NCBI GenBank assembly: GCA_047495785.1
Contig: JBLDXI010000046.1
Span: 372,001 to 436,000, forward strand
Direction of reading: 5' to 3'
Length of the DNA stretch: 64,000 nt
From: Lepidodermella squamata
Lineage: Eukaryota > Animalia > Gastrotricha
Positions 27,991-56,356 of the stretch are shown here, one piece after another (positions within the stretch are counted from its first letter, which is position 1; each line of letters opens with the position of its first letter). The position numbers and the translations under genes are program-made. Below the pieces are notes generated by a model, which worked only from the letters and a program-made list of their open reading frames with translations, did not search any database and had not been told where the DNA came from.

Positions 27991-30900
27991 TTAATCGCCT
28001 TTGGCTACAAGTTCCAGCCTATGCTTTAAGTCAGAAAAAGTCGGTCTTTCATCGATATTCGAAGCCCAGCATGGCACCATCACCATTTCATACCTAGCAA
28101 AGTGACAGTAGCTTATAAGTATAGCCATTGTAAGGGTGACTTACAAATTTTCAGGGCAAATTGGAGGGCGATCGAGCCGATAACCATCCATGACTCTCAT
28201 CGCGACATCAGCATTTGACAATTCCTTGTAAGGGATGTACTGGCAGTCTGGAAGATGCAAAATTATAGATTGATTGATCCTGGAGGATGCTTCAGGGCCA
28301 CTCTAAATCAACCAATCAACTTACATGTGAAAATTTCCCACAATACCACTCCAAAAGACCACACGTCACTTTTCCTCAGGAAAACATGGAGCCGGATGGA
28401 TTCAGGCGGGTGCCAGCGAACAGGAATAATCCGATTAGAAGAGCACCGGTAGTACAGCTCGTTTTCGTCAATAGTCCTCGACATTCCAAAGTCGGAGATT
28501 TTCAAAACCTCCCCCGACGAGACAAGGACGTTGCGACATGCCAGATCTCGGTGCAGACAGTTACGTTCGGATAAATAAGCCATGCCGCTGCAAATCTGTT
28601 GACAGTACCCGAACAGCTCTTCGACATTCTTCGGATAGACACTTTTTCGGAGGAAAGAATGCAAATCACCTCGTTCCATAAAGGGCGTGATTATTCCAAC
28701 TTCCTCGCCGTAGAATGACACCCCGCAAAGCTCGAGGACGTTCTCGTGAATGAAATCTCTCATTAACAAGGCCTCCTTAAAAAACTGGGTCAATTCGCGT
28801 TCCGAAGATGGCATGACAATCTTGAAGCCGACCAGCTCATCATTTGTCCCGTTTTCAGAGGTAAGCACAGCTCGATAGACACATCCGAACTGACCATGGC
28901 CGCATTTATCCAGCAACTTGAGATTGGTAGATTTCACAATCACGCTTTCGATTTCTGTCAGCAAATCGCCGGAGCATTGGTACATTAGTTTGTTAAGATC
29001 TTTCGTTTTCCCAGTATCCTCTGAACTTTTCCCGCCATCTTTTTTGGCTTTTCTGTACTTTCGTATAAAGTATAATGAAGCAGCTATAGCTAGCACGGTT
29101 AAGGCGATGAGTCCTCCAATAATGCCGTAAATATAATCTGAAGAGAAGAAATACTTTGCAAGTGATTAAATAGTTAACGAATTTTACCTGGAAGATTCTG
29201 ACTTTCTGCCTTATCTCGTTGTAAGCTGGTAGTTTCCAGGAACTCAGGGTTATTTTGAGCAGTTGTTGTATTAGTTGTATTAGCAATAGTTGCTGTTGTT
29301 TCAGGCTTGATAATGGCGGATCTTTCATTAGAAAAACACGCTTCAGAGTGAAAATCCCATTCATGGGGATAGTCTATACAAGTCATGGCCTTTTTGAGCC
29401 ATTTCATTCGAGGGAGGAGGCTCATAAACCGGGCCGGCTCGTCAGATAGGCAGCTACTGGTTTGGTAGCTATGTGAGAAAATGCCGATCGGAACCACTGT
29501 TTCGCCGGTTTTCTTAACTGCATCCGCAGCACTCTTTACGAAGAGTATGGAACCATCAGCCATGTCGCATTTCGGATATTTCGAAGTCGGGTTGAAGCAA
29601 AACGTTTTGTTACCGCAGACGGATACGTTACCAGTAACGTAATAGGTGTAGATATTCGTACTCGAGGAATTGTACGCCGTCCTGCGGTCAAGCATGGCAT
29701 ACGCTGGTAGACCCCACAATATCATCTGAAAATAATAGATCAGATGATTTAATCAGAGAAAAATTGCCCCCAGATAGCATATATATTAGGCTGTTAAAAC
29801 TTGATCGTTTTCATTCTAAAGTATCGCTGATGGAATTAGTGTAAGAATTTTGAACATTTGCCAGTTGTAAAAGCTAAATTGCATTTTTCATTTCCAGATA
29901 CATCATATCAATCATATGTAATATCAAAAATGGGGTTTTTGAGAATGAATGATTAGAATCTTGTTTCTTTTTTATCATTACTTAGGGCAAAATGACAATT
30001 CGGGCGAAACTTGATGTCGTTAGCATCGTTGAATAACTCTGATTTATGCTTGTTTACATCCGTTTCAAAATTACAACTTTCAAGTAAAAAGCGGCTTTTT
30101 GAACGTGAATGTAGAGGCAAAAACAAAGACTTTTTACTTGTCACCTCTCGCCTTGAAAAGGATGTAAATAAGCCTAAATCCGAGTTATTCAACGCCGCTA
30201 ACGATGTCTTCGCTTGATGGCTCCTATTCTACAACGCCAAACTTTGAAATAATTAGATTTGAAAGAAACCAAACTGCCTGATAACTTTCAACATCCGGAG
30301 CATACATGACGGTTAAGCTTAGAAACTATCGATTCTCTAATGTATGTTAGAGCACCGAGATTTGATTCTAATAGGGAAAACGCGTAATTAGAAAAAAACC
30401 CGCGATAACTCTCTGCTCTTAAAACTTCTTAAAACTTTCACCTGCAGATGGATCTCACTGAGATGTGAATTATGCATAATATCTTTTAGCGGAACCAAAT
30501 ATGCTGCAGCGGAACCAAATTTGCATTTTGCGGAACCACTGTTGAAAGATGCCAATCATTTTTGAATAATTCTACCAGTTTAAAGCGAAGCATGTGTTCT
30601 GAATTGAACACTCTGTCTTATAGAGATTCTTACGCTGAATTCATGAGCTAATGATTTTTTCCGAATAATCTTGACCTGCAAGAAATATCCGAAAAGTGAT
30701 TTCGTGCCACTAGAAAATTCCAAACTTTGGTTCCGCTACGGCAAATTAGGTTCCGCTCACCGTAAATTTTGCTCAGGTAAAAGGAAATCAATTTTTGAAA
30801 TCAACCGTCCCGGCACGCCCCGGCGCGGATAGTTATCGTGAAAATTAAGAGAAAAAATGACCTTTTTTCAATGCATTGGTCTAGCCACATGTTGCTTTAA

Positions 30901-33296
30901 ATAAAGCTGAGATTTGTTTCACATCTCAACCTTTATCTATGATCAGGAATTTCGGGTTAATACTCACCCTCAGCTAACAGTTGCGTATAAAACACACTGT
31001 AATATGTAGCAAACATCTTCGAAAACAGAGAACTTATGTTTTGGACGATGAGGCCGGGTCTTAATTGTCTCAGCTTTTTGAAACCACTGGCACCTGAAAA
31101 CTTAAATTTACCTGGCTATCGGATAATAAATTGACAGGGTGTTCGGCAGATGATGTGAATATCTGCTCACGAGTTCGAAGTACAGTAACGACGCCGTCTG
31201 TTAAGGCCTTTGTTACGGTCAGATTCCGAGCATTAAAGTTGATGATGGTGTCATTTCCTTCTGGGGCACATTCCCGCAGGGTAACCAACATGTAAAAATC
31301 GACAAAGGTCGCTAGGCATGGTTTGTCAAGTGCGGCGTGTGCAATGCGCCTTTCAAAATAGAACTGGACAGCGGTAAGTCTTGGCCCATTAGTTGCAAGA
31401 GATGACAACCTATTCTCACACTGTGAAGGAATTGATGATCGGTGAAGGTAGCAGCATGCCATTTGCAGCTGTGCCAAGTCACTCGAGGATAAAACCGACC
31501 GATAAGCAGCTATGCAGGAGTAGATATCTAGCTGAATGGCCCGGCCATCCAAACCTTTGCTGCCGAATTCGATATTCGTAAAATTTTTGTTCGATGCAAA
31601 TATCGACGATTCATTAAATTGGTAGTAGACGCCATGTCGGTTGTGAATCGAAAAGCGACCTTCTTTTGTTATCATGAACACAATGAAAGACCACTGCTGA
31701 ACTGGCAGGAAACCGGGTAGGTAAATTTGCCATTTATCTTCGACAGTCACCTCTAAACTGCCGTTATATTGCTGCCGATAACTAGCGACTAGATTTGGTG
31801 CTGAGATGCTCATAATGACCTTTTCCTCGCCAGTCGGTTTGAAGTAAAATGCTATTGTGAATTCGGTTAGATTTGAGAACTTTCCATGGATATCGTGAAT
31901 TCTGAGCAAAAAATTAGATCCTCCATGCGCCGATAATGGGTTATTGAAAGGACCATCATGCCATATCAGAGTCGCTATCTTACGCAAATCATAGACCATG
32001 AACCATGGGCCTAAATCGCGAAAATCGTATTCCCAAGCTACTGGGATGATCATCAATATCGCAAATGGTCTCGGCCACGGAACAGCTTGAAAAATTCGAC
32101 AATATAAAATGATGAAAATGAGCTTTTCCAACATACCATGACTTATCGAAGTGATGGTCAAATGATGGGGACGTGTGGCTCTATTGATGGTTTCAAGTAG
32201 TAAATCCTCTTCGGCCCACATACTTATGCGCTCTAGAATCGCAGCATGGAATCTGCCTGTACCATCCTCCCTGAAAGAATCTCTCACTTCTAATGCAGAT
32301 TTAGGAAGAAAATCTTACGAAGTGTTCACACTGACGACTCTCAATCCAGAATTTCGAAGTAGACTGCTTATCTGAAGACAACAATATCCATGTATCTACT
32401 AAAATAGTCTGATAAGTACTTCATCGCTCGCTGCTGAAGTTGAATCGGAATTGCCATAAATACCGACTGGTAACAAGGTAGATGATGTAATAAGACAAAT
32501 TCTTCTAAACCTCGGGACTCACTCATCTGCCCAGCCGCATATATTTCGCTGCGATTTTTGGTGAATGCCACGATTTCTTCCAGCCGCTCGATGCCGAGAG
32601 CTTCCTCAAAAATCATGAAGTTAGCGAACATCGCCGTGTCTGAGGCGTCGGGACATATGACAAAATCAAACGGTGGTAAAGGAGGTGCCAGAAAGATCTT
32701 TTTCGTGAAGTTTGTTTCAGCGAGACTTGGGTCGAGGTCGTAACCTGGGGCTTGCGATACATGCATGGTGACATTTGTGAAGTTATTTCGAAAAATGATG
32801 GCGACAAACGTCCAAGTGGCTAGTGGGATTTCGACCGATGTCATTGATAAAGCCGTCCAATCTGGTATATTCCCAACCCTACTTTTGATTTGCAGGCGAA
32901 TTTCCGCTCGATTTCGCGAACTCTTTCGTACAGCTTCTACAACCATGTACCATTCATTTCCTTCCGTCCTTACTTTGTAAAGTTCAGAATTGGTATTGAT
33001 TTCAGAATTGAAGAAAAAACAGTGTGTGAAATCCATCGACAGAGGTCGATTGATTCTGTATCGAGCCACGGCTTCATATTTGTCATCTATTAGTTGATAG
33101 GCCGTGTTGGGATAGCCGAACGGCCCTGGGCGCCAACTAAGCGGTCCGCTCGACCGATAAACCAATTTCGCCCCGCGAGGTATCAAGTTCTTCAGGCCAT
33201 CTCGTGCATCCATCGACACGAAAAGGCTTGCGGTAGTAAGATTCAATGACGCGATGTGAGGTAGCCAGCTGAACCCGAGAAATGACAAAAAATCAT
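27991..33296 (-). CDS. RTK-B1: LamG - reduced SEA-like - LamG - inactive trypsin-like domain - Thr-rich stalk - TM - tyrosine kinase; 1-nt frameshift just after the ATG as assembled
   Basis: Exons 33296-32523, three short exons at about 32467-32136, then 32085-31112, 29725-29188, 29137-28325, 28247-28145 and 28093-27991. TM is IYGIIGGLIALTVLAIAASLYFI. Kinase motifs: GHGQFG, VGFK, HRDLACRN, DFG, LYY, PVRWHPPES, SDVWSFG. Confidence 0.88.
30013..30209. mobile_element. MITE in an RTK-B1 intron, absent from the homologous B2 intron
   Basis: About 55-bp imperfect inverted arms (tcgttagc..cgttgaataactc.gattta.gctt.tttacatcc.tttcaa). B2 shows the empty site gggcgaaactttatggcttgatggctcc near 45745. 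Confidence 0.8.
30488..30762. mobile_element. Degenerate MITE with gcggaacc subrepeats
   Basis: Three gcggaacca copies at the left end and two inverted ggttccgct copies at the right end. Confidence 0.55.
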
Positions 33297-33385
33297 TGTC
33301 TAAAACTGTCTAAAAATAAAACTTTCATTAGAACGGGATTTTTATTAACAAAACCAGATGGCTTGCTTTTGATCGAATTTCTTTA

Positions 33386-36300
33386 TTAAACAGCTGTCAT
33401 CTGTTCAATTCGAGTTAATAAATCACTGAAATTAGGTCTGGTCTCAGGGTCATGAGACCAGCACCGTTCGACAACATCTGTGAATCTGAATAATAACATT
33501 TTACATTATGCTCTTCGATTATTACCGGAGCTCACGTTTTTGCCGGGCAGCGGATAGGTCGATTGAGGCGGAGGCCGCTGCAAACTTTGACTATGACGTC
33601 TGAGTTCTCCTTCAGGTCGTTGTAGGGTGACTCTTGGCATCCTAAAACATATAATCACAGAGTGTAGAAAAAAATCAGTGAAATCTGTAGAATGACAAAT
33701 AAATAATAAGAGTGTCGACCCAGTAAGATATTTTATAATACCAAAACCAGAACCAAAAAAGCGCTTTTACCAGAAAATATTTCCCACATGACGACTCCAA
33801 AAGACCAAACATCCGCTGAGGTGGAAAATTCGTTTCGTTCGAACGATTCGGGTGGATGCCACCTGACTGGGATAGGTTTACTAGACCCATCGTAGATGGA
33901 TGAGAAATTTTCATCTTGCGATGCTAGAATCCTGGCCAGTCCAAAGTCGGAGATTTTAAGTATTTCCTCGCTTGAAACAAGGACATTGCGACAGGCAAGG
34001 TCACGATGAACGCAATTCTTCTGAGATAAATACACCATTCCACAACAGATCTGACGGCTGAAATCCATCAGTTTGAAAACATCGACGTCATCGATCGCTT
34101 TGAGATATGATGTTAGAGCTCCATTCTTCATGAACGGGACAATTAAATTCGGCTCACCTCGCGACAGTATCGTCCCAATCAGTTTAAGAACATTTTCATG
34201 GTCAAATTTACTCATTACCGAAATTTCGTGAACTAGAGCTGTTGCTTCACATCGATCTGTTTTGATAGTTTTGATAGCTACTGATAGTTCCGGCTTGTCT
34301 GGTTGTTTCATAGTTCCGTGCCAAACTTTGCTGAAATAGCCCTCACTAATGACCGATCCTTGTTCCAGCCAGGAGTCTTGAAGTTCGAGCGATAGCAGTA
34401 GATTGAGATCGTTATTATCCAAGTCCATTCGCTGCACCATATCTCGAAAGTCTATTGCATCGATGTATTTCGAACATTTTTGCTGGTGAGGCATCCTTGC
34501 AACAGCAGCCTTTCTTCGATGATACAGCCAGACACCCAAAACCGCGAACAAAGTGGCGACACAAAGCGCCACAGCTAACAGAATTATCGCCAAGTCTGAT
34601 ATTCCATCTGAAAATACGAAAAACTTGTTAGAAATTCCATTTGACAATAAGACTGGTTTTAGAGGTAAAAAGACCGATTTGGCGGAAAGAAACCGCATTT
34701 TGATGGCAATTTCTGAATATTCGTATTTGGTGGCGGAAGCCCAGAAATCACTCATTTCTCCCTAAAAAAGCTTTAGATCTGGAAGCTGGGATGATACCTG
34801 AATCAGCCGAAACTTCAAATCTCGTTTGGTTGGAAAGATACGTATCTGTTGAAGTCAATCCAACGGTCGCTTTGCCATCATCTGGAGTGTATACCAATCT
34901 CTTAACGCATGAATCCCATTGTAGAAGCGCTTTAGCCGGCAAACAAGCTCGTTGATCCAGGATCCAATTGGAATACGCCAGTAAATTCACAAATAGTATA
35001 ACGTTCGCCGTAGCCCGCCTCTTGTTTTTCCTTGAGTAAACTCCAATCTTGAGAATTGAAATCGTAAAACCGTTGGCCACTCTCTAGCGACTTTTTACCT
35101 GGATTAATCTGGGCCCTATAAGGGTTGCAGGGTTGAAAGGCTCGAAAAGAACCAGTGCTGCACCTTCAACTAAATTCATTTCTCTGACATCGCTTTCAGA
35201 ATTGGCGACAAAACATAGCAGAGAATGATCTCGCCCTCCAAGAGCTAAATCGCAAGCCTCTGAAGTCATTAGTCGACCTAAAATGTAATAATACGTCTTG
35301 CCACTCCTGAAGCCATACACTAATGCTGTGCCATTCCAATCTACAACTTGGTGGTAGCCACTGATCAATATTTGAACAGCGAATTTTAGCGAATTCACCG
35401 AAGTGTTCTGGGGCCAAAACGCTATGCCTAAATCCTCGTTTTCAACATGTTGCGTGGAAATGAGAGATTGGACACATTGCGCTGTTGACATGACGACAAA
35501 TCGGCTGATTCTTGAAGTTAAACAATCTCTCCCAATTTGGTCTATAAAAGAGTGGGCAATGTCGAATACCCCGAGGTCTTTATCAGTTGTGACTGACGGA
35601 ATGTCTCGGAAATTGTTTTTACTGCCCGTCGCATCGTGGAAATAACGGCATGCGTCTTGAACTTGAACGAGTTCTTCGAAACTCAACGGAGCTGCGTAAA
35701 GCCCGCAGCAAGAAATGTAACCGGTGGTACTTATGGCATCTGTTCCGATTCGTAGGCCTTCAATAGCTTCTCCGAGAGTAAAATCTGAGTCTCCCGTGAT
35801 TTCCATGGCCATACTATCTTCGAGGGACACAGAAAGCTTCGCACCCTGGAAAATCAATGCTATGAACTGCCAAGTGTTGGGAACTATCAGCCCGGCTAAG
35901 ATCAACGGGGAGGATCTGTTGTTGAAGTCTATCATGAGATCGCCTTTCGCTGCTATAATACTGACGTTGCAAGGGCTAAATTGCAGGATTTGCTGCGTTG
36001 TTAGATCTATGAACAAGTAGAAGAACACTGTGATAGAATTTGCTTCGAACATGTTCGGAAAATCGATAAAAATTTGATGCGAGAGTGGAGTGCTTGTTTG
36101 CAGGTCGTAGAAAGGTCCAGTTTCAAAGCTGTGATAAGGAATTCGTTTGCGATTGATCGCCGGCCCGTGAAGTCTGTTCGGCCCGACGTCAGACCACTGA
36201 CGATTTTCAGTCAACGGCCAAAGACCAATGAGTGCGAAGGTCCTCGGCCAAACAACTCCTTAAAATGATATCAAGTATCAACAAATAAATTGTTCCTCAA

Positions 36301-39300
36301 CTGCGTTCACCAGGGTTAATTAATATGATCAGGGTAGAGTCTCCTACCATGAGGGCCGTGCCCTTTTGATGCATAACTTCATTTTTCCTGCCCCAATATG
36401 CATAACTCACGATTTAGACCTGAAAATAACTGAACAGGGTAAATCGACCACGTAGATCACGATTCTGATGTCAGAATGCAGTATAAATGTACGGAAACCC
36501 TGTATTAGATCAAATCGCCCAAAACGGGACATCGATAGACACAATAACTACCGATGAGGCTCCATTGGCAACGAAATAGAAAATGTTGCGCTTTAAATTT
36601 ATAAAGTGGTTTTAACTTAGAGGTCACTAATTATTCATTAGTGTTTGGCCATGCCAAGTTATTAGTGGGTAATAAATTATTCATCCAGATTTTAAGATAG
36701 GACGGATTAATTGCAGCTGAAACACGCATTTTTCGACGTTAATTTCAAACTTCCCCGAAAAGAATATGACTTGACCTAGTTTCCAGGGACTAGTTTCGCA
36801 AATCTACAAGCTCCCACCCCTCACTCAACTCACCTCCGTTAGCCGTTAGCCATCAGCTATGTCTGCCTTCTAATCCTTTTCTATTCTAGTTAGTTGAGGT
36901 GAGAAGGTCGATTACAAATCAAGTTTAAAACCCTAAGGCCTATTGATTCATTTGCTTCAACCTAAAGTTTAGCGTGACGGCCTCTGTACTGCTTCCTTGT
37001 TTAAAGTTACGACGTTAAAACTCTCGATCATCAGCCTCTAGGCTAGAATGGCTAATGCCACGAGCCTCGTAAGCGTGACACCAAAGCTAAATGGCTCTAA
37101 CGTCAGTGGAGTATTTGGCGAAAACCCCGATCATCTTAAAAGGTTACTACTTAGTCGAATGGTTGTCGAAATTTTGATTATTTCCAGCTTTAAATTTTGA
37201 ATCAATGAGAATTTTTGGAATTAGAAGCTGTGATTGCGTGAAAAAAAGTAAAAATAATTCAATTTGAAATTTGTCGGTCCTTTAGTGGTTTTAAGTGCAT
37301 TCTGACATCAGAATCGTGATCTACGTGGTCGATTTATCCTATTCAGTTATTTTCAGGTCAAAGTCGCGAGTTATGCATATTGGGGCAGGAAAAAAGTAAG
37401 TTATGCATTACAAGGGCACGGCCCCAATGGTGCATAATCGTGGCTCACTTCGGCTGATCAACAATGGCTCATTGGCCATGTGTTGCATAAACGTGTGCTT
37501 TTGCGGGGTGATTATGGGGATTCAAATTTGTGAATCTTGAAGCCCTGGTTTATGGGTTTTATGGGTCTAATATTTCTTCGATAATTTATCAACCACTATT
37601 ATATTATGCTCACCCATTGAAACCTTTGAAACGGCGATTCCGCTCATTATGTCTTGCATGCTCGAAACTTGTTCCATCTCCGTGGTATTCGTAAGCTCAA
37701 AATGACGCCGTAACGTAATGAAAAGCTTGGCAATCATTTCGCTGCAATACATTCAAACTTTACTTGAAGCAGTGCAACATGGCAGTATCTCACTTTTCGG
37801 ACTTATCAAACGCCGTAACAACCAGACCATGTAGTGATACATTTTTGGCGATTTCGAAATTAGAAATGATCTGAAAAGCGGAAGATTTAAGCTGGAAGAG
37901 GTTCACCCTAAACTAACCTGTTCTTCAACTGCGCGTTTCAACCTAATTGTCGTGTCGCTCAACGGGTTGGAATATTCTGGGATCCATGTATGATTCGCCA
38001 GCTTTATCAAGCCGATGACTGACCCTGTATCATATTCTAGAATGTAAACTCAAGCAGAGTGGTATATTGACATAGTTGGTTCGGAATTACCTAACTTTGA
38101 GTTGAAACAACTCCTTACATTGTTTTAACCTCCCTGCTATCATCTAATTTATTACAAGGTTCGTTCGGAGTACTGCTGAAAACACAGCACTGAAACCCCC
38201 GAGAACCCTAAACTATTCGAAATAAAATCGCACCAGTAAATACACTGTCTTAGTGGAATCAACGAGTCCACAAAATCGCTATCGGCTGGACCAAAATTTG
38301 TTGAAGGGCGAGATTGGTTAAATGTTCCAGCATTTTAGTGTGTTATTTCTTGAACAGAAAGAAATTCCTGAATTTCCGGGTTCGATTCGCGGTGGCCAAA
38401 AATACCTGGGATTTTTTATTACTTTTCTAGAAATAACTAAAATTTCAAGATGCTGGAAAATCAAACCAATCGCGTCCTTCAACAAATTTTAGTCCAGTCA
38501 ATAAAGATTTTGTGGATTAGCTGGTTCCACTAAGGTGTTATAATAAATCACTAACATTATCAAAATAAGCATCTCGACAATGTTGGGGCGGCCACAAATT
38601 TTTTTTAAATATTCTACCTATAGTTTGCGCATTGGGGTTGGGGCCTGTAAATACCTGACAGTGATCTGAAATTGAGCTTTTATACATTAAACTAACAAGG
38701 TTGGTTGAATCGCAATCTGAAAAGTCTGGTTAAAGATGGGCTGAAACCGGTTGTAACCTAACAACACGCTGAATTGACTTACATATTTGGTTGGCAGATA
38801 AATTCATGTGCCGTACTCGCGTGTCATTTATCAAAGACGATAGTTGTTCGTAGCTGAGAACACTCGAGTGCATCATGAAGTTAGAAATAGCTTCTTGGGA
38901 GGTCACTGTTGCTTTAAGCTTTCTGTCGTCGAACCAAAGTCTCGCCGCGCCAATGTCGAGCCGCTTGGAATCGTCGAGTTGCACAGTTTCGCGGATGCTT
39001 TCCGATATCTTTTCGACGTAGTAATCGGGACCTTTTGCTACATACAGCGTAGTTTTATTCTCTTCGCGGTCGTAAGTAATCGCGATGAAATGCCACTTGT
39101 TAAAATCGATAATTTTAACGTTAAAAATCGTTTTCATTGAGTTTGGCTCAGTGCCAAATCCAAGCCGTAGCAAATCGGGTGGGCTGAAGACTGCCATATA
39201 GCCACCTTTTTTACGGAAAACAAAGTCAAACAACCCGACGCTTGCTGATCGTGAAGCGGAGAAGAAGAAGAAAGAAATAGTAAAATCGCCGAGCAGGTCT

Positions 39301-39557
39301 TGTTCCAGATCATAAGCTTGCAAAATAAATACATTGATGTGTATATGCGCCTTGACGGTATGCGATGCGTTATAGTGTCCATAGGGACCTGTTAGCATAG
39401 CAGAGGGAATGGTGAGAGCTGAGGATTCTACCAGAGGGTATTCAGTCGGGCTTAGGTCTTCAATGCCAGCTTCTGAATCCAATGCGAAGTGGAAGCGCAT
39501 TGTCGAATGCGAAACTGTGTTGCAATGCATTGATATTAATATTAAGCAGTCCAACAT
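33386..39557 (-). CDS. RTK-A1: LamG - SEA - LamG - inactive trypsin-like domain - TM - tyrosine kinase
   Basis: Exons 39557-38783 (signal + LamG), short stalk exon(s), SEA exons at about 38036-37608, then 36258-35099, about 35047-34798, 34607-33771, 33641-33526 and 33477-33386. TM is LAIILLAVALCVATLFAVLGVWLY. Kinase motifs: VAIK, HRDLACRN, DFG, PVRWHPPES, CWSHDPETRPNF. Confidence 0.88.
36346..37431. mobile_element. Non-autonomous DNA transposon with ~130-bp TIRs in an RTK-A1 intron
   Basis: gggccgtgccctt...gattctgatgtcagaatgca (36353-36480) is inverted at 37296-37424. The equivalent A2 intron near 51720-51766 is under 50 nt. Confidence 0.88.
38249..38534. mobile_element. MITE with ~85-bp imperfect TIRs in an RTK-A1 intron
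   Basis: cttagtggaa...tccacaaaatc...aaaatttgttgaagg...ttccagcat is mirrored by atgctggaa...ccttcaacaaatttt...gattttgtgga...ttccactaag. Confidence 0.8.
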
Positions 39558-40442: not shown

Positions 40443-42123
40443 CACCGGCTTAGTGGCGGGATTTTCATCAATCTCATCGTCAACCTTCTGCCAGAATTCG
40501 TGGTCTGCAGCGGCATCTGAGGTTGTTGCGGGTGTCGAAACCACTTTGGCCAACTTTTTCGCGAGCAGATCGGCCTTTGCCTTGCTCCCTGTCAACGCCT
40601 TGCCGTTTCCCGTCTTTAGACTCACTACGCGGCATTTCTCAAGGCTCGAGTGGCTCGAGCTCGAGAACCTCATGGCGAGGGATCCTGGCCTCCAGCCTGG
40701 TGGAGTGCTTCGCCTGCCTGGTCCCCACGACTTTAGCGTCAGCCAGTCGGCGATCAACGATCTCAAGCCTTTCAAGGCCCCTGACGGGCTTGACAGGGTC
40801 ATCAATGTCTTCTACAAGTGGGGTGGCGCCTCTCTCCAGGTCCACCTTCGCTTGCTCTATAACATGAGCCTTGGGAGCCAATACACGCTGCCTGAATGGA
40901 AGGAGGCAGTCGCCGTGGCCGTGCCTAAGTCGGGCAAGCCGCCTGATGCCGTGGCCTCACAGCGACCCATTTCGCTTCTACCAGTGGATGCCAAGATCCT
41001 CGAAGCGATTATCGCCCGTTGGATGAGTCAGGTGCTGGAGGCTCAGCATCTCCTACCTAATAATCAATACACGTTTCGGGAACATCGGTCAGCAGCCGAC
41101 ATCCCTGTTCGTATCGCCCTCCGTGTACACCAGGCTCGGGCGCGGTTCTTGGTATCCTCTTTGCCGGAAAGCTCACCTGGAAGCCTCACATTGATAACGT
41201 CCTGAACCGTTGAGGTCGCAACCTGTCGTGGTTTCACTCGATTGTGCGTCTCGCCCGGGGCTGTCGCTGCGATGGCGCCGTGCTACTTACCTTTCCCTCG
41301 TCCGGTCAATTGCCACTTTCGGCTCCGTTGCGTTTGCCACTGTCGCTAAGACCCAGCTTCGACGTCTCGATGTGTAACGATTGGTGTTACGGCGGCATCC
41401 CGGTCATGACTAATAAGATGAATAACCATAAACCATAGCTGTGATCTAGGACTTTTGATATATGATCATGTGTAAACTAATTAGGCTGTGTAGTGCGCTC
41501 TATCAAACCAGCGTTGTCAGTATTTAAGCTCTCAATTTGCCAGTGACTGGTGTTCAGTTTATTTTCAATGAATAAATCATTAAGGGTAGCAGTTGACCGT
41601 TTCCGTGACACGATGTGCTTCAAAACAATTGTCTCCGTGCTATCCTGCATGTCCGCCTGGACGACCGCGTCCGCGTCTCCACTCTAGAGCTCCGCTGTCG
41701 CTAGCCCAGCCTCCAGTCCTTCCTGACTCGCGCTCGAAGCCGTTATGTCGACAACGCTTGCCTCTGCGGGAGGACGTGGAAAGCGTCCGCACCTCGTTGC
41801 CGCCCCTGAAATCCCCTGTGACTCTGCTGGCTTCTCCGCTGCCATCGGGCCCGCTCCCTGCACTCCTCTAATCCTGTCATGTCTTATTAGCTCTTCTGTT
41901 TTCCGTGTCACATATATGTGGTTTGTTTCACCCCCGCGCCTGTCCGTATCCAGTTCACCAGCTAGTTGCTTCTCGCGTGTGCCTTTTACCTGTAACCGTT
42001 TGTTCGTCTTTCTTTATGTGTTCGCCATATCAGCGTGCGATAATTACTCCCCTGTATGATAAATCCATGCGTGTGCCTCCCCTTCGTGTATTCGGCGCAC
42101 AGTCTCCGACAAGCCTTCTTTGA
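40443..42123 (+). mobile_element. Degenerate LINE of the same family as 6643-8150, with a 5' inversion, an internal deletion and a nested solo LTR
   Basis: KAPDGLD, VPKSGKP, SQRPISLLPVDAKILEAIIARW and FREHRSA match the first copy. The sequence jumps near 41145 to the LGILF/LTWKPHI region. The 3' end (PLREDVE...KSPV..L...LPSGPLP) and 3'UTR are homologous. Confidence 0.9.
41373..41610 (+). mobile_element. Solo LTR (238 bp) inserted in the LINE
   Basis: TGTAACG...CGTGACA termini, 5-bp TSD CGATG at 41368-41372 and 41611-41615, AATAAA at 41571. Removing it restores the LINE frame RRLDVLQNNCLRA. Confidence 0.92.
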
Positions 42124-42614: not shown

Positions 42615-45600
42615 TTAATCGTCTTTGGCTACAAGTTCCAGCCTATGCTTTAAGTCAGAAAAAGTCGGTCTTTCATCGATATTCGAAGCCCAGCATGGCA
42701 CCATCACCATTTCATACCTAGCAAAGTGCAAAGTGACAGTAGCTTTTACGGATATAGCCATAATAAGTGATGGCTTACACATTTTCAGGGCAAATTGAAG
42801 GGCGATTGAGCCGATAACCATCCATGACTCTCATCGCCACGTCAGCGTTTGACAATTCCTTATAAGGAATGTACTGGCAGTCTGGAATAAGAAAATTAGA
42901 CTGGTCAATTCAGGAAGATGCTTTAGGGCCACTCTAAATGAGCCTATTAACTTACAGGTGAAAATTTCCCACATGACCACTCCAAAAGACCACACGTCGC
43001 TTTTCCTGAGGAAAACATGAAGCCGGATGGATTCAGGCGGGTGCCAACGAACAGGAATAATCAGATTTGAAGAGCACCGGTAGTACAGCTCGTTTTCGTC
43101 AATAACCCTCGACATGCCAAAGTCGGAGATCTTCAAAACATCCCCCGATGAGACAAGCACGTTGCGACATGCCAGATCTCGGTGCAGACAATTGCGTTCA
43201 GATAAATAAGCCATGCCGCTGCAAATCTGTTGACAGTACCCGAACAGCTCTTCGACATTCTTAGGAGTGACACTTTTTCGAAGGAACGAATGCAAATCTC
43301 CTCGTTCCATGAAGGGCGTCACTATTCCGACTTCTTCGCCGTAGAAAGCGACCCCATACAGTTCAAGGACGTTCTCGTGAATGAAAGCTCTCATTAACAA
43401 GGCCTCCTTAAAAAATTGGGTCAATTCGCGTTCTGAAGAAGGCATGACAATTTTGAAGCCGACCAACTGCTCATCATTTGTCCCAGAGGTAAGCACAGCT
43501 CGATAGACACATCCGAACTGACCCTGGCCGCATTGTTCCAACAACTTCAAATTGGTAGATTTCACTATCACACTTTCGATTTCTGTAAGCAAATCGCCGG
43601 AGCATTGGTACATAAGTTTGTTTAGGTCTTTCGTTTTCCCAATTTCCTCAGAACTTTTCCCGCCATCTTTTTTTGCTTTTCTGTACTTTCGTATAACGTA
43701 TAAGGAAGCAGCTATAGCTAGAATGGTCAAGGCGATGAGTCCTCCAATAATGCCATAAATATAATCTGAAGAGAAGAACTATTTTGCAAGTGATTAAATA
43801 GTTAACGAATTGTACCTGGAAGATTCTGACTTTCTGCCTTATCTGGTTGTAAGCTGGTAGTTAATAACTCAGGGATATTTCGATCAGTTGTTGCAGTTGT
43901 TGTATTTTGTATGTAGTTGTATGTAGTTGTTGTTGTTTCAGGCTTGATAATGGCGGATCTTTCATTAGAAAAACACGCTTCAGAGTGAAAATCCCATTCA
44001 TGAGGGTAGTCTATACAAGCCATGGCCTTTTTGAGCCATTTCATTCGAGGGAGGAGGCTCATAAACCGGGCCGGCTCGTCAGATAGGCAACTACTGGTTT
44101 GGTAGCTATGCGAGAAAATGCCGATCGGAATCACTGTTTCGCCGGTTTGCTTAACTGCATCCGCAGCACTCTTTACGAAGAGTATGGAACCATCAGCCAT
44201 GTCGCATTTCGGATATTTCGAAGTCGGATTGAAGCAAAAAGTTTCGTTACCGCAGACGGATATGGTACCAGTAACGTAATAGGTGTAGATATTCTTACTC
44301 GTGGAATTGTACGGCGTCCTGCGGTCAAGCATGGCATAAGCTGGTAGATCCCACAATATCATCTGAAAATGATAGAACAGATGATAATAATCAGAGAAAT
44401 ACAGCTCCTGATACAGCTGTAAAAACATTTTCTGTCTCATTCCAAAGTACCGCTAATGGAGTTATTGTAAGAATGTTGAAGTTGTGTCAGTTGTATATGC
44501 TACCCACATGAAACCTCAAGGGCTTACAGTAGGCCTAAAACTACATTTCCAATTTTAGGTAACCGTAATCCGGTACAACTTCGAACAGGTACAACTTTGA
44601 ACGTTTCACGCAAATCAGCTTTTCTCTGAAACCATGGGGATCTACCACTTGGGAATTTTATTGAATATAGATATCGCTGAGATCTAACATTTTGCCAAGT
44701 TTCATCAACAGAGCCCCCACAGTCTCTTCCTTAAAAATTCCACATAATAGAATTTTCTACTTTGAAGTGTTGTCCCGCGATAACCGCAGCAGATATCCGC
44801 GCGCTCTAACTTAGCGAATTCAAGCTTATACTTTTCTGAAGAAGTAGCCAAAAAGGCACGCCCGTCTATAGAGTGGTTTTCGCGTGGCATGCGCTCAAAG
44901 TTGCAAGGGTAGCCGGTATAACTTTGAACACTTGAATGTACAACTTTGAACACGATAGAAATTCATTATTTTGACTTAGAGGAGAATGTTCAAGTTTTAT
45001 CCAGTCATTTTTCGTATTTACTGTCGAGCATAGATAACGTAGTGATCGAAGAGGACACTTCCTATCTCGTCATGGCAACGAATTAATTTTGAATACGGAG
45101 TAAAAAATCCACCACAAGAATGTTTTTTGTGTAACATTATGAATTTTCACGCACTACGTTCTCTATGAAGCAAACCAGTGAGGCGAAAATCGCAAAATTC
45201 GCACAAAATTCTCTGCGCGCGCACAAAGGTGGATTTTTTATATCAGGAAATCTTGGTGTTCAAAGTTGTACTTCGCTGTTCAAAGTTGTACTTTTGGGGT
45301 ATCTCTTGCCAAATCCTTACGCTTGCGAATGTCCAAGAATAAAAAATATCAGGATGTTACAGAAGGCGGCCCCTATCGAACTGCGTTGAAATCCCGACCA
45401 AAATCGCATCTGTTGAATTTACACAGCACATTGAAGTTTGCCTGGACGTAGGTGTTCAAAGTTGTACCGGATTACGGTACATAGGCCTACGTTTTACCCA
45501 TATAGGCCTATGATTTTTCGGCCCGAGCTAGGCCTATGTTCCAATTTAAGCTTACGCTAGGCCTAGGCATCAGTAAATAAGTGAAATATGCATAATTAGA

Positions 45601-48369
45601 CTGTACCAATGATGCACATGACAGATAAATGGAATTTCATTTCAGGATTATATCGAAAATGGGATTTTTGAGAATGAATGAGGAATTTTTCATTAGAATC
45701 TCGTTCCTTTAATATTATCCTTATTTAGGGCAAAACGATCATTTGGGCGAAACTTTATGGCTTGATGGCTCCGAGACTACAAACCCAAAACTTTGAAATA
45801 ATTAGATTGAAAGAAACCAAACCGCCTGATAACTTTTAACATCCGGAAATAAATAAAGGTTAAGAAACTCTTCTTAAGAAACTGAAACTCACGATCCTCT
45901 AATGCTGTCAAAATCTCGACCTGCAAATGTCGCGTTGTGCAAAGTAAAGAAATCTCAGCTGTATTAAAATCGAAGTGTACCTGCATTGAAAAGGGTCATT
46001 TTTCACATAGTTTTTTGGCTATGACTTTTATCTATGATCCGTAATTTCGGGTTAATGCTCACCCTCATAACAAATTTTCGGGCTCAGAATCTTCGAAACC
46101 AGAGAAATTATGCTTTGGAAGTTGACTTAATTTTAGATTTTCAGCTTTTTGAAACTACTGGCACTTGTAAACTTTAATTTACCTGGCTATCGGATAATAA
46201 ATTGACGGGGTATTCGACATATGATGTGATTATCTGCTCACGAGTTCGGAGTACAGTAACGACACCATCTGTCAAGGCCTTCGTTACGGTTAGATTCCTG
46301 GCATTAAAGTTGATGTGGGTGTCATTTCCGACTGGGGCACATTCCCGTAGAGTTAGCAACATGTAAAAATCGACAAAGGTCGCTAGGCATGGTTTGTCGA
46401 GTGCCGCGTGTGAAATGCGTTTTTCAAAATTGAACTTGAGAAAGGTAGGTCTTGGCCCATTAGTTGCAAGAAATGACAACCTATTCTCACACTGTGAAGG
46501 GGTTGATGATCTGTGAAGGTAGCAGCATGCCATTTGCAGTTCTGCCAAGTCAGTCGAGGATAAAACCGACCGATAAGCAGCTATGCAGGAGTAGATATCT
46601 AGCTTCATCGCCCAGCCATCTAAGCCTGTACTGCCGAATTCGATATTCGTAAAATTTTTGTTCGATGCAAAAATCAACGATTCATTAAATTGGTAGTAGA
46701 CGCCATGTCGGTTGTGAATCGAAAAGCGACCTTCTTTTGTTATCATGAACACAATGAAAGACCACTGTTGAACTGGCAGGAAACCGGGTAGGTAAATTTG
46801 CCATTTATCTTCGACAGTCACCTCTAAACTGCCGTTATATTGATGCCGATAACTAGCGACTAGCTTTGGTGCTGAGATGCTCATAATGACCTTCTCCTCG
46901 CCAGTTGGTTTGAAGTAGAATGCTATTGTGAATTCGGTTAGATTTGAGAACTTTCCATAGATATCATCGATTCTTAGTAAACTATTATATCCTCCAAGCG
47001 CCGATAATGGGTCATTGAAAGGACCATCACGCCATATCAGAGTCGCTATCTTACGCAAATTATAGACCATGAACCATGGGCCTAAATCGCGAAAGTCGTA
47101 TTCCCAGGCTACTGGGATGATCATCAAAATCGCGAAAGGTCTCGGCCACGGAACGGCTTGAACAATTAGTCAATAAATAATGATGAAAATGAGCTTTTCC
47201 AACATACCATGACTTATCGAAGTGATGGTCAAATGATGGGGACGTGTGGCTCTATTGATGGTTTCAAGTAGTAAATCCTCTTCCGCCCACATACTTATGC
47301 GCTCTAGAATCGCAGCCTGGAATCTGCCGGTCCCATCCTCCCTGAAATGAATCACTCGATTCTAATGAAAATATGGAAAAAATCTTACGATGTGTTCACA
47401 CTGACTACTTTCAATCCAGAATTTCGAAGAAGACTGCTTATCTAGAGACAACAATTTACATTTTATACTAAAACAGACTGATAAGTACCTCATCGCTTGT
47501 GGCTAAAGTCGAATCGGAATTTCCCGAAATACCGACTGGTAGCAAGGTATGTGAAGTAATAAGGCTAATTCTTCTAAACCTCGGAACTCACTCATCTGTC
47601 CAGCCGCATATATTTCGCTGCGATTTTTGGTGAATGCCACGATTTCTCCCAGCCGCTCGATGCTGAGAGCTTCATCAAAAATCATGAAGTTCGCGTACAT
47701 CGCCCTGTCTGAGGCGACGGGACATATGACAAAATCAAACGGTGGTACAGGAGGTGCCAGAAAGATCTTTTTCGTGAAGTTTGTTTCAGCGAGACTTGGG
47801 TCGAGGTCGTAACCTGGGGCTTGCGATACATGCATGGTGACATTTGTGAAGTTATTTCGAAAAACGATGGCGACAAACGTCCAAGTTGCTAACGGAATTT
47901 CGACCGATGTCATTGATAAAGCCGTCCAATCGCGTATATTCTCAACCCTATTTTTGATTTGCAGACGAATTTCCGCCCGATTTCGCGAACTCTTTTGTAC
48001 AGCTTCTACAACCATGTACCAGTCATTTTCTGCCGTCCTTACGTTGTAAAGCTCTGTCTTGGAATTCATTTCAGAATTCAGGAAAAAGCAGTGCGTGAAA
48101 TCCATCGATAGAGGTGCATCCATTTTATATCGAGCCAAGGCACTGACATATTTTTCCTTTTTTAGTTGATGGGCCGTGTTGGGATAGCCGAATGGCCCCG
48201 GGCGCCAAGTTAGCGGCCCTTCCCACCCAAAAACATATTTCACCCCACGAGGTATCAAGTTTTTCAGGCCATCTCGCGCATCCATCGACACGAAAAGGCT
48301 TGCGGTAGTAAGATTCAATGACACGATGTGAGGTAGCCAGCTGAACCCGAGAAATGACAAAAAAATCAT
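42615..48369 (-). CDS. RTK-B2: paralog of B1 with an intact start and the same architecture
   Basis: ORF pieces 48369-47503, 47127-46174, 44440-43802, 43730-42831 and 42821-42615 are collinear with B1. Signal peptide MIFLSFLGFSWLPHIVS; kinase motifs GQGQFG, HRDLACRN, DFG, LYY. Confidence 0.9.
44563..45477. mobile_element. Non-autonomous TIR DNA transposon (915 bp) in an RTK-B2 intron
   Basis: CCGTAATCCGGTACAACTT ... AAGTTGTACCGGATTACGG|TA, with subterminal gtacaactttgaac repeats. Absent from B1; a second copy lies at 1-339. Confidence 0.9.
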
Positions 48370-48455
48370 TGTCTAAAACTGTCTAAACATAAAACTTTCA
48401 TTAGAACAGGATTTTTATTAACAAAACCAGATGGCTTGATTTAGGTCGACTTTTT

Positions 48456-51400
48456 TTAATAATCAGCCATCATCTGTTCAATGCGAGTTAATAAATCACT
48501 GAAATTAGGTCTGGCCTCGGGGTCATGAGACCAGCACGGTTCGACAACATCTGTGAATCTGAATAATAATATTTTAAATTAAATGATCTCAAATAATTAC
48601 CGGAGCTCACGTTATTTCAGGGCAGCGAATAGGTCGATTGAGGCGTAGGCCGCTGCATACTTTGACAATGACGTCCGAGTTCTCTTTCAGGTCGCTGTAG
48701 GGTGATTCTTGGCATCCTAACACATATAATTACAGTGTACAGAAACAAATGAGGCAGCGAACGAAGTAAGGGAAGGCTATGAGGGGTAGCGTACCCCCGA
48801 AAGGTAAAGACAGAAAATCACGGAAAAACATTTGGTCCGATCATATGGGTCCGATAAACTGGGGACCCAAGGAACCCTGCCTCCACATCCCCTCACCTCG
48901 AGGATTTTACTTCCTTCACCGAAATGAGGACAAATCCAGGACATCTGTAAGTAATCTGTATCTGGGCTTCGTCGATATAGGTAACAAAATCGTCAAAATC
49001 CTAGAAAATATCCAAAAGTTATCATACCGGAAAATATTTCCCACATGACAACTCCGAAAGACCAAACATCAGCTGAGGTGGAAAATTCGTTCCGTTCGAA
49101 TGATTCAGGTGGATGCCACCTGACTGGGATAGGTTTACTTGACCCATCGTAGATGGATGAGAAATTTTCATCTTGCGATGCTAGAATTCTGGCCAGGCCA
49201 AAGTCAGAGATTTTTAGTAGTTCCTCGCCTGAAACAAGAACATTGCGGCAAGCGAGGTCGCGGTGAACGCAATTCTTCTGAGATAAATACACCATTCCCG
49301 AACAAATCTGACGGCTGAAATCCATTAGTTTGATAACATCGACGTTTTTGATCGCTTTGAGATATGAGGTAAGAGCTCCATTCTTCATGAACGGGACAAT
49401 TAAATTCGGCTCACCTCGCGACAGTATCGTCCCAACCAGCGTAAGAACATTTTCATGGTCAAATTTACTCATTACCGAAATTTCGTGAACTAGAGCTGTA
49501 ACGTCACATCGATCTGTTTTGATAGTTTTGATAGCAACTGATAGTTCCGGCTTGTCTGGTTGTTTCAGAGTTCCTTGCGAAACTTTGCTGAAATAGCCCT
49601 CACTAATGACTGATCCTTGTTCCAGCCAAGAGTCTTGAAGTTCGAGCGATAGCAGTAGATTGAGATCAATATTATCCAAGTCCATGCGCTGCACCATATC
49701 TCGAAAGTCTATTGCATCGACGTATTTCGAACATTTTTGCTGGTATTCAGACGGCATCCTTGCGACAGCAACCTTTCTTCGATGATACAGCCAGACACCC
49801 AAAACCGCGAACAAAGTGGCGACAGAAAGCATCACAGCTAACAGAATTATCGTCAGCTGGGATATTCCATCTACAAAAAACGAAATATACATAAAACCCA
49901 CATCTAGTTAGTTGAATACTGCTCATGAAATTTAGATTTAAATTTAAAAAATTTGAAAATGTTCTCTAGCTGAATTTATACATTTTTTATAAGAATAGGT
50001 TAGTGGTATGTTTCTTACATCGAGAATTTCATCATCCGCAATTTATCATGAACATGTTATACTTTTCATTGGAAGAAAGGGCCGTCGTACGAAGTAGGTT
50101 CCTGGGGCTGTATCGCACACTGGATAGAACGAGTGACTGATTATGCTTGCATGTTCAACCCTAATGTTGCACTCCGAAATGTCAGCTTTCACCATGCAAT
50201 ATTGAGCTCAAATATCCCGTATAACCGTATATGGAAGCAGATAATATGTTACCTGAATCAGGCGAAGCCTCGACTCCAGTTTGATTAGAAAGATATGTCC
50301 CCGTTGTAGTGACATATTGGCTGATTCCAGCGGTCGCTTTTGTGAAAACGGGAATATAAACGAATCTCTTTACACACGAATCCCATTGAAGTAGTATTTT
50401 GGCTGGCAAACAAGCTCGTTGCTCAAGGATCCAGGTTGAATACGCCAGTAAATTCACGAAAACGATAATTTTCTCATGAGCTAACATCTTGTTCTTTCTT
50501 GCGTATATTCCAACCTTGGGAATTTGGGTAGTTCAACGGTTGAATATTCTATAAAGACTATTACCAGAATTAATCTAGGCCCAATAAGTGTTGCAGGGTT
50601 GTAAGGCTCAATAAGAGCCAACGCCGCCCCCTCCATTAGGTCCATTCCTTTGACTTCAACATTTGCGAAAAAACACAGCAGAGAATGATTTCGCCATCCA
50701 ATAGCTGAATTGCATGCCTCGGTGGTCATCAATCTACCTGAAATGTAATAGAACTTCGAGCCACTCTTGATACCATACACCAATGCTGTGCCGTCCCAAT
50801 CTACAATTTGGAGACTACTGACCAGAATTCCAGCAGCGAATTTTAGCGATTTTTCTGAAGTGTTTTGCGGCGAAAACATCAAGCTAAGATCCTCATTTTC
50901 AGCATGTTGCGTCGAATTTACAGATTGGACGCATGGCGTTGTGGATATGACGACAAATCGACCGATTCTTGCGGCCAAGCAATCTGGAGAAATTTCATCC
51001 AGAAAAGAGCTTGAAATGTTGAATTCCGCTAGGCCTGATTCGATTAAATGGATTCGGAAGTTTCTTGCTTTGCTTTTATCGCCTGCCGGATCGTGGAAAT
51101 AACGGCATGCGTCTTGAACTTGGACCAGTTCTTCGAAACTCAACGGAGATGCGTAAAGTCCACAACAAGAAATGTATCCGGTGGTACTTTTGGTATCTGT
51201 TCCGATTCGTAGGCCTTCAATTGTTTCTCCGAGAGAAAACTCTGCCGAGCCGCCTGTAATTTCCATGGCCATACCATCTTCCAGGAATACAGAAAGCTTC
51301 GCACCATGAAAAATCAATGCTATGAACTGCCAAGTGTTGGGAACTATCAGCCTGGCTAAGGTTAACGGCGAAGATCCGTTATTGAAGTCTATCATGAGAT

Positions 51401-53113
51401 CGCCTCTCGCTGCTATAATACTGACGTTGCCAGGACTGAATTCCAGAATCTGTTGCGTTGTTAGATTTAGAGACAAGTAGAAGAACACGGTGGCAGATTT
51501 TGCTTCGAACACATTCGGAGAATCTATTTTAATTTGTTGCGAGAGTGGATTGCTTGTTTTCAGGTCGTAGAAAGGCCCAGTTTCAAAGCTATGATGAGGC
51601 ATTTGGTTGTAGTTGATCGCCGGCCCGTGAAGTCTGTTCGGTCCGACATCGGACCACTCACGATTCTCATTCAACGGCCAGAGACCAATGAGCGCAAACG
51701 TCCTCGGCCAAATAACTCCTGAAAAATAGTTTAAACGGGATTGACGTTAACCGATATAGTGCTCACCCATTGAAACCTTTGAAACAGCGATTCTGGTCAT
51801 TATGTCCTGCGTGTTCGAAATTTGCTCCATCTCAGTGGTATTCGTGAGTTCGAAATGACGCCGTAATGTAATTAAGAGCTTGGCAATCGTTTCACTGCAA
51901 TACATTCAAACTTTACTTGAAGCAGTGCAACATGGCAGTATCTCACTTTTCGGACTTATCAAAAGCCGTAACAACCAGGCTATCTAGCGATGCGTTTGTT
52001 ACGATTTCAGCGTTAGAAGTGATCTGAAAAGCGGAAGATTCAAGCTGGAAAAAGGTCGCCTCAAACTAACTTGTTTTTCAACTGCTTGCTTCAAACTAAT
52101 TGTTGCAGCGCTCAGCGGGTTGGCATAATTGGGCATCCATGTCTGATTCCTCAGCTCGATCAAGCCGATGACTAACCCTGTTTCATGGTAAAAACTCAGG
52201 CATAAGGGTATATTGGGATTCAACTTTGAGTTATATCGGGTATGAGCGCTGGGGTTTTTCCTGGTTTTCTTGCCTGGTCCTCTCCAGCTGTGGGGGCGGC
52301 GTTCCCCCGTACAGAACTCGATGGAAAGAAGTTACGCAAAATTGACTTACATATTTGATGGCTAGCTAAAGTCGTGTGGCGAACTCGAGTGCCATTTATC
52401 AGAGACGGTAGTTCTTCGTAGCTCAAGGTGCTCGAATGAATCATAAAGGTAGAAATAGCGTCTCGTGAAGACACTGTTACATAATATCCAGGAATGTCTT
52501 CGAACCAAAGTCTTGCTCTACCAATATCTAGCAGATATGAATCGAGGAGCAAAATTTCTTGAACCTTTTCCGAAATTCTTTCAACATAGTAATCTGGACA
52601 TTTCGCTACATATAACGTGCTTTTCTTCTGTTTGCTGTTGTAAGTAATCGCGATGAAATGCCACTTGTTAAAATCGATGATTCTAACATCAAAAATCGTT
52701 TCTATTGAACTCGGCCCGGTGCCAAATCCAATCAATAGTTGATCAGGAGGCTTGTAGGTTGCCAAATAGCCGCCATTTCTATGGAAAACGAATTCATACA
52801 ACCCGACAATGTCTGATCGTGTAGCGGAGAAGAAGAAAAAAGAAATAGTGAAATCGCCGAGTAGGTCCTCCAGACGATAAGCTCGCACAATGAAGGACTC
52901 TCTGGAAAACGCCTTTACGGTGTAGGATGAGTTGTAATGGCCGAAGGGACCTGTCAGCATGGCCGACGGCACGCTGAGCGATGAGGACTCTATCAGGGGG
53001 TAATTCGTCGGGCCTATGTCTTGAACACCAGCGTCCGAGTCCAATGCGAAGTGGAAGCGCAATGTCGACTGCACAGCTGCAATGCAATAAATTGAAACTA
53101 GACAGCCCAACAT
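48456..53113 (-). CDS. RTK-A2: paralog of A1; splice path through the stalk (52350-52190) unresolved
   Basis: ORF pieces 53113-52351 (signal + LamG), SEA (LIELRNQTWMPNYANPLSAATISLKQAVEKQ), 51674-50481, 50487-50182 and 49901-48993 (TM + kinase). Last exons end EQMMADY* at 48456. Confidence 0.82.
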
Positions 53114-56316: not shown

Positions 56317-56324
56317 TATAAATA
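56317..56324 (+). promoter_or_regulatory. Candidate TATA box of LamG-EGF paralog 2
   Basis: TATAAATA followed 21-27 nt later by TCAGT initiator-like motifs, with the ATG at 56357. Confidence 0.6.
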
Positions 56325-56356
56325 GCACTGATTCCAGTCAGTTCAGTGCGAAAAAA

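Follow-up and report, generated by a model that had tools for sequence, protein, structure and literature searches.

The classification of receptor tyrosine kinases follows their ectodomains, and receptor kinases whose ectodomains have been shuffled and are restricted to particular taxa are already known. Among the ligands of vertebrate kinases, the receptor-binding part can be a LamG domain, as in Gas6 and protein S, or a dead S1 protease domain, as in HGF and MSP, where it serves as a protein-binding module in signalling through the receptor tyrosine kinases MET and RON. The locus described here lies in a stretch of 64,000 nucleotides from the gastrotrich Lepidodermella squamata (contig JBLDXI010000046.1 of assembly GCA_047495785.1, positions 372,001 to 436,000 of the forward strand), referred to below as the window, with positions counted from its first letter. 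Four genes on the minus strand of the window, between 27991 and 53113, are predicted to encode receptor tyrosine kinases whose own ectodomains contain two LamG-type domains and a dead S1-like domain. They probably represent a lineage-specific receptor family in which a captured lectin and dead-protease cassette has been combined with a stalk, membrane span and tyrosine kinase. Like HGF and MSP, these proteins place a dead S1 domain in the context of receptor tyrosine kinases. In HGF and MSP, however, the domain is part of a soluble ligand, follows kringle domains and functions in a protein that needs activating cleavage, whereas in the window receptors it sits inside the receptor, follows LamG domains and has no activation site.

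Several other described systems share individual features with these genes. Type II transmembrane serine proteases such as enteropeptidase, matriptase and hepsin are membrane-anchored and carry an extracellular S1 domain, often together with SEA and other modules. These proteases have an N-terminal anchor, an active catalytic triad, zymogen activation and no kinase. The window proteins, by contrast, have a predicted type I orientation, a dead triad and an intracellular tyrosine kinase, and they fall outside the type II group because the membrane span follows the S1-like domain in the chain and no catalytic triad is left. Taxon-restricted receptor tyrosine kinases with lectin-type ectodomains have also arisen by domain shuffling, including Sweet Tooth of Hydra, which carries a C-type lectin, and the discoidin-domain receptors. 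The window receptors resemble these in joining a tyrosine kinase to modules of carbohydrate- or matrix-binding type; to our knowledge, no receptor of this kind has an S1-derived domain or the LamG_3 pair found here. Finally, S1 domains with a substituted triad act by binding in the arthropod serine protease homologues (masquerade and the homologues of the prophenoloxidase cascade), protein Z, haptoglobin and azurocidin. All of these are soluble, most keep a full-length fold, often with activation cleavage, and we know of none that is fused to a kinase.

The cluster reads in the order A2, B2, A1, B1, from the ATG of A2 at 53113 to the stop codon of B1 at 27991. DNA comparison shows that an A-B gene pair was duplicated as a block to give two pairs, with exon identities of 75-92% between A1 and A2 and of about 89% between B1 and B2. 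Spliced models were assembled manually, guided by reading frames, by GT-AG sites and by conservation between paralogs. All introns are GT-AG and mostly 47-61 nucleotides long, none of the four models contains an internal stop, and the encoded proteins are 1159-1187 residues in length. Gene A1 (33386..39557) is intact and encodes 1187 residues in nine exons (39557-38783, 38048-37918, 37870-37794, 37741-37614, 36258-35099, 35047-34798, 34607-33771, 33641-33536 and 33485-33386). Its paralog A2 (48456..53113; nine exons, 1180 residues) is open when the exon 2 acceptor is placed at 52177. Both B genes have eight exons: B2 (42615..48369; 1165 residues) is intact and B1 (27991..33296; 1159 residues) is open past its start. 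The predicted layout of each protein is a signal peptide, two LamG_3/ConA-like domains, the S1-like domain, a stalk rich in serine and threonine, one membrane span and a tyrosine kinase. Within both pairs, only 86-89 nucleotides separate the stop of the A gene from the ATG of the B gene (33297-33385; 48370-48455). These gaps contain AATAAA and an acceptor-like TTTTAG immediately 5' of ACAATG, a layout that resembles an operon or trans-splicing arrangement.

The identification of all four genes as receptor tyrosine kinases, first proposed in a reading made from the sequence alone (the sequence-only reading), is borne out by profile matches, kinase motifs and the single membrane span. The large 3' exons match Pfam PK_Tyr_Ser-Thr with E-values of 2e-63 (A1) and 3e-64 (B1), and the motifs HRDLACRN, DFG and PVRWHPPE are found. 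The kinase domain occupies 33389..34368 in A1 by its Pfam match, with equivalents located by Pfam and motifs at 49625-48459 (A2), 28913-27994 (B1) and 43541-42618 (B2); its glycine loop is canonical in the B genes. The best PDB matches are all tyrosine kinases (EGFR, Eph and MET). With phmmer, the A kinase matches Eph at 1e-46 and MET at 1e-40, and the B kinase matches MET at 1e-42, Eph at 1e-41 and Mer at 1e-40. A MET-like label for the kinase was considered and rejected, since the Eph, MET and Mer scores are about equal. The proteins likewise stand apart from the MET/RON family, as the ectodomain lacks Sema, PSI and IPT modules and the kinase shows no specific preference for MET. Each protein contains one hydrophobic 21-mer scoring above 1.9, with basic residues after it, which marks the predicted transmembrane helix (A1, 34522..34593; A2, 49856-49785; B1, 29126-29055; B2, 43754-43683). 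The preceding stalk is rich in N-glycosylation sites, N-x-S/T sequons number 12-16 on the extracellular side and 0-2 on the intracellular side, and A1, A2 and B2 have a hydrophobic N-terminus. These features are those expected of a type I receptor.

The origin of the ectodomain can be traced through a set of secreted relatives. A profile of the four large ectodomain exons was compared exhaustively with 1.84 billion representative proteins in HMMER; there were 18 matches, and the non-bacterial ones are proteins on ENA metagenome contigs. Pfam detects Laminin_G_3 in the non-bacterial relatives and, in seven of them, Trypsin as well. These proteins have not been described before (P0001, P0003, P0004, P0005, P0006, P0011 and P0017, with genes on contigs L001-L003), and they show the same cassette in the same order as the window receptors. 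In both groups, the LamG_3 domain opens with WP.P..L.G.WP and closes with a C(R)-x-x-H linker, after which comes an S1 domain without His57 or Ser195. On L001, L002 and L003, the genes of the relatives stand in tandem, contain hardly any introns, encode the LamG-LamG-pseudoprotease layout and, wherever the end is visible, stop after the S1 domain. The secreted proteins thus end after S1, whereas the window receptors continue into a stalk, a membrane span and a kinase. The S1 domain of the secreted proteins has its full length and is detected by Pfam, while that of the window genes is reduced and escapes Pfam; the secreted proteins lack the insert of about 110 residues that separates the LamG domains of the A genes; and P0011, unlike the window genes, has CUB domains upstream. 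The gene for P0004 is closer to the window genes in that it has introns of about 50 nucleotides and shares an intron position with them: on L003, a 54-nucleotide phase-0 intron follows '...LIQ' at the position of A intron 5 (50-51 nucleotides). On L002, two open reading frames with CUB domains precede a LamG-pseudoprotease reading frame (4546-9270), and the three probably form one gene of CUB-CUB-LamG-pseudoprotease structure. On L003 (GC content 38%), a gene for the ligand-binding domain of a Cys-loop channel adjoins the LamG-LamG-pseudoprotease gene that has the 54-nucleotide intron (3301-3748; 5237-7843); this contig probably derives from a related animal.

The juxtamembrane domain is connected to S1 proteases through these relatives. 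In A1 it spans residues 579-792 (34943..35635, by hmmsearch, hhalign and alignment), interrupted by a 51-nucleotide intron at 35098-35048, and in A2 residues 568-778 (50410..51092, by hmmsearch and hhalign), with a 50-nucleotide intron at 50564-50515. The B domains are split by much longer introns. In B1 (residues 532-757; 29378..31441; hhalign and ESM Atlas) a 1386-nucleotide intron (31111-29726) separates the N-lobe, which extends to 31112, from the C-lobe, which begins at 29725, and in B2 (residues 536-761; 44015..46512; hhalign and hmmsearch) the intron has 1820 nucleotides (46182-44363). The sequence-only reading had rested its case for an S1 domain on short motifs, and all of the strings it quoted were located on the minus strand where it had put them. 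A C-x15-C loop with the spacing of Cys42-Cys58 is present in all four genes (A1, 35524-35474; A2, 50981-50931; B1, 31318-31268; B2, 46389-46339), as are VEGAAL in the A genes and CDMADGSILF in the B genes, and a C-terminal segment of the form IGVYS...NWI (A) or IGIFS...KWL (B).

The profile of the paralogous exons finds proteins with LamG and Trypsin domains at E-values from 2e-22 to 1e-9, and the alignment to these relatives runs without a break out of the LamG domain and across the Cys-x15-Cys loop, which in the relatives is the Cys42-Cys58 loop of their Pfam Trypsin domain. When a hidden Markov model (HMM) was limited to the relatives' S1 domains, with no LamG columns, it still matched the C-terminal half of each of the four spliced proteins at 18-25 bits. 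Its alignment runs directly across the junction of A exons 5 and 6, so that this splice is supported as well. In the reverse direction, an HMM of the four window S1-like regions alone matches the S1 domain of P0017 with an E-value of 9e-14 and 48 bits, compared with a best score of 4.1 bits among 1600 shuffled decoys, and P0017 itself covers the whole Pfam Trypsin model at 7.8e-24. Profile-profile alignment with hhalign of the window S1 regions against those of the relatives gives a probability of 98.5% and an E-value of 1.8e-15 over 179 columns, which extend from the Cys42 equivalent to the C-terminal helix. With the A genes only, the values are 97.2% and 3e-11, for the C-lobe only, and with the B genes only they are 96.5% and 8e-10, over 180 columns in both lobes. 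A joint profile of window genes and relatives matches 538 S1 proteases in the PDB, with a best E-value of 3e-26. Evidence independent of these intermediates comes from the ESM Atlas, where 96 of the 100 named matches to the B1 C-lobe exon are Trypsin clusters (best score 0.92). In the alignments, all four genes retain the Cys42-Cys58 pair, spaced by 15 residues, and both gene types retain a pair at the positions of Cys168-Cys182. Cys191 and Cys220 are present together in B and missing together in A. The S1 disulfides therefore appear, by alignment, to have been kept or lost as pairs. Taken together, the chain of profiles through relatives that are positive for Pfam Trypsin provides good support for an S1 ancestry of the juxtamembrane domain, as the motifs had suggested.

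The domain no longer has the residues of an enzyme. Alignment to a solved protease and to the relatives places glutamine (A1), proline (A2) or glutamate (B) at the His57 position and glutamate (A) or aspartate (B) at the Ser195 position, in agreement with the sequence-only reading, and the aligned S1-like domain contains no activation site of the Arg/Lys-IVGG type. Since none of the four genes keeps His57 or Ser195, the domain is a pseudoprotease and not an enzyme. Because the secreted relatives also lack these two residues, it would already have been a pseudoprotease before it was joined to the kinase.

The two LamG_3-type domains that had been predicted upstream of the S1-like domain were recovered by structural modelling, Foldseek and an HMM made from the relatives only. 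Exon 1 of A1 (38783..39557) encodes the signal peptide and the first LamG_3-like domain, identified by Pfam and the relatives-only HMM; the latter places its equivalents at 53113-52351 (A2), 33288-32523 (B1) and 48369-47592 (B2). The second LamG_3/ConA-like domain of A1 lies at 35636..36256, with equivalents, again by the relatives-only HMM, at 51716-51093 (A2), 32083-31442 (B1) and 47154-46513 (B2). Pfam Laminin_G_3 matches A1 exon 1 at an E-value of 6e-5, under the curated cut-off, and this is the sole Pfam signal for LamG. The relatives-only HMM matches all eight LamG exons of the four genes, at 1e-28 to 1e-32 for the second domain and at about 1e-26 (A) or 1e-8 to 1e-9 (B) for the first. 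From an alignment of 21 rows, AlphaFold2 (AF2) built the second A1 LamG domain (exon residues 1-210) at predicted local distance difference test (pLDDT) values of 80-90. Foldseek assigns this model to ConA-like jelly rolls (E 4.5e-9), with matches that include the lectin-like subdomains of neurotoxin binding domains and a trans-sialidase lectin domain. Between the LamG domains, the A genes have an insert of about 110 residues, encoded in A1 by three small exons (37614..38048) and in A2 at 52177-51767, according to the gene models. The B genes have in its place a 61-residue linker in two small exons (B1, 32371-32137; B2, 47441-47208) without similarity to the A insert. The sequence-only reading had put a SEA domain here. 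None of the three exon pieces of the A insert, each only 25-43 residues long and scanned separately, has a Pfam match, and SEA is a guess for the A genes; in the B genes the linker is too short, and a SEA domain is unlikely. LamG_3-type domains of the same family also occur in two small genes elsewhere in the window (3375-4261 and 56291-57052, both on the plus strand), which encode a signal peptide and one such domain each; the relatives-only HMM matches them at 1e-16 and 1e-10, where Pfam finds nothing. This family of lectin-like domains seems to be widespread in the genome.

No further instance of this cassette combined with a kinase turned up in the sequences searched. None of the 18 matches among the 1.84 billion representative proteins joins the LamG-LamG-pseudoprotease cassette to a kinase. 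A scan of metagenomes with the kinase exon yielded 80 kinase loci, none with a LamG or S1 module of this family, and no relative emerged when metagenome loci were scanned with the ectodomain alignment. Word-indexed protein searches gave no matches with the paralog alignment and just one close relative with the S1 region of P0003. Full-text literature searches retrieved work on HGF and MET only and no receptor kinase with a protease-fold ectodomain. The statement that a receptor tyrosine kinase class with an S1-derived ectodomain is undescribed thus holds for the literature and protein libraries searched.

A number of results weigh against a functional receptor family of this kind, and they are considered here with the explanations that they would favour. 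Direct searches fail to see the S1 domain: Pfam Trypsin matches none of the window exon pieces, even at an E-value of 10, a profile of the window exons only finds nothing among PDB sequences at E-values up to 10, and ESM Atlas features of the A1 S1 part and of an A1 C-lobe fragment give only chance-level matches (ketoacyl synthase, SMP-30). The segment between the equivalents of Cys58 and Trp141 has 46 residues in the A genes and about 57 in the B genes, compared with 83 in chymotrypsin; about 26-37 residues are therefore missing, and with them part of the N-terminal barrel. The sequence-only reading had expected modelling to return a trypsin fold. AF2 modelled the LamG portion of the contiguous exon well but gave no confident S1 fold, with pLDDT values of 22-53 for the A1 S1-like part in the run with the 21-row alignment and a mean of 32 in a single-sequence run. 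The S1 likeness could accordingly be one of ancestry only, the domain having eroded into a structured spacer or an unrelated fold without chymotrypsin architecture. This is improbable, as profile-profile alignment stays in register over both lobes (179-180 columns), disulfide partners are kept or lost pairwise, an independent language-model search calls the B C-lobe Trypsin, and the ratio of nonsynonymous to synonymous substitutions (dN/dS, Nei-Gojobori estimates between paralogs) of the S1-like domain, 0.35 in both pairs, indicates constraint. The low pLDDT values probably result from the reduced state of the domain, from an alignment with only about 12 informative rows and from an input that lacked the last ~35 residues. 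They speak neither for nor against the fold, and the juxtamembrane domain is a candidate for a reduced S1 fold.

A different explanation concerns the gene models. The relatives are secreted and end right after the S1 domain, and the genome seems to be tightly packed with genes, A and B being only 86-89 nucleotides apart. Each model could therefore be a chimera of two genes, with a secreted LamG-LamG-pseudoprotease gene upstream of a membrane kinase with a short ectodomain. In A1, the open reading frame of the kinase exon does reach an upstream in-frame ATG at 34755, and the sole public run with the locus provides no RNA evidence for single transcripts, as its contigs cross introns unspliced and the run is thus genomic DNA. 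This arrangement is very unlikely given the structure of the genes. In all four genes, the exon encoding S1 and stalk stays open up to its GT donor, and reading frames agree across the junction of stalk and transmembrane exon. In the B genes, the gap to the transmembrane exon is only 50 nucleotides (29187-29138; 43815-43766), too short to hold a terminator, a promoter and a start. The A transmembrane exon is conserved between A1 and A2 while the sequence upstream of its acceptor is not, the ATG at 34755 has no counterpart in A2, and the transmembrane exon on its own has no signal peptide. Gene structure therefore suggests that ectodomain and kinase are carried on one mRNA. It is also conceivable that the genes are recent duplicates in decay, pseudogenes or soon to be, whose architecture has no current function. 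The T run after the ATG of B1 (33288-33296) has six T where that of B2 (48361-48369) has seven, and this 1-nucleotide deletion relative to B2 causes the frame to be lost at codon 4; it could reflect misassembly of the homopolymer, or else a genuine early frameshift or pseudogenising change. A2 has two extra T at the A1-type exon 2 acceptor, in a T run at about 52178-52194, a +2 frameshift, so that its frame is open only through the shifted acceptor at 52177, 17 nucleotides downstream of the A1-type site. The glycine loop of the A kinases is degenerate or atypical (EGYFSKV), and a retroelement fragment lies between the A-B pairs. Even so, decay is quite unlikely. Both defects fall in homopolymer runs, which are common sites of assembly errors, and A2 is rescued by the nearby acceptor; the four reading frames extend over about 1160-1190 codons in 8-9 exons with conserved splice sites; and the overall dN/dS is 0.27-0.31, with 0.12-0.16 for the kinase. 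For the second LamG domain the ratio is 0.23-0.25 and for the first 0.34 (A) and 0.55 (B). The ectodomain is thus under constraint, yet evolves faster than the kinase, and in the B genes it evolves fastest in its membrane-distal part.

The fact that the dead LamG-LamG-pseudoprotease cassette exists in secreted proteins makes it most likely that the receptors arose by the capture of such a binding module. In this lineage-specific family, a secreted LamG-LamG-pseudoprotease module would have acquired a stalk, a transmembrane segment and an intracellular tyrosine kinase. Both the lectin-like domains and the pseudoprotease may bind an extracellular ligand, either a glycan or a protein, and ligand-driven clustering would then activate the kinase, as in other receptor tyrosine kinases. 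The proposal of the sequence-only reading that the pseudoprotease serves as bait or as a tethered ligand is speculative. Signalling would in this case proceed without proteolysis. A dead S1 domain, known as the binding module of soluble factors such as HGF, would thus also be able to sit in the receptor itself. The likely source of the module is visible in the secreted LamG-pseudoprotease family. The locus offers a tractable case of receptor origin by domain capture and a test bed for binding by dead proteases. The S1-like domain is too diverged for Pfam, and similar receptors may for this reason be under-reported. A more far-reaching possibility, which we consider rather doubtful, is that these genes constitute an undescribed class of receptor tyrosine kinases made from a whole secreted recognition protein, and that paralogs which are still secreted may pair with the receptor cassette in the role of partners, ligands or decoys. 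If this were true, it would be a natural case of a ligand-type module incorporated in a receptor. A role in immune or self/non-self recognition would be in keeping with tandem birth and death of genes and with the higher rate at which the outermost LamG domain evolves.

The remainder of the window contains genes of other types. A GC-rich (about 52%) retroelement of the type without long terminal repeats, with an RVT_1 domain, is present in two copies or fragments on the plus strand (6644-7849 and 40453-41205), and the reverse-transcriptase fragment at 40453-41205 is the one situated between the A-B pairs, that is, between B2 and A1. On the minus strand, a muscle-type myosin heavy chain gene occupies 13300-26300 (Pfam Myosin_head, E 2e-106), with long coiled-coil exons downstream of the head, and an intron-less open reading frame at 58693-59442 encodes an HD phosphohydrolase domain (Pfam HD, E 3e-7).

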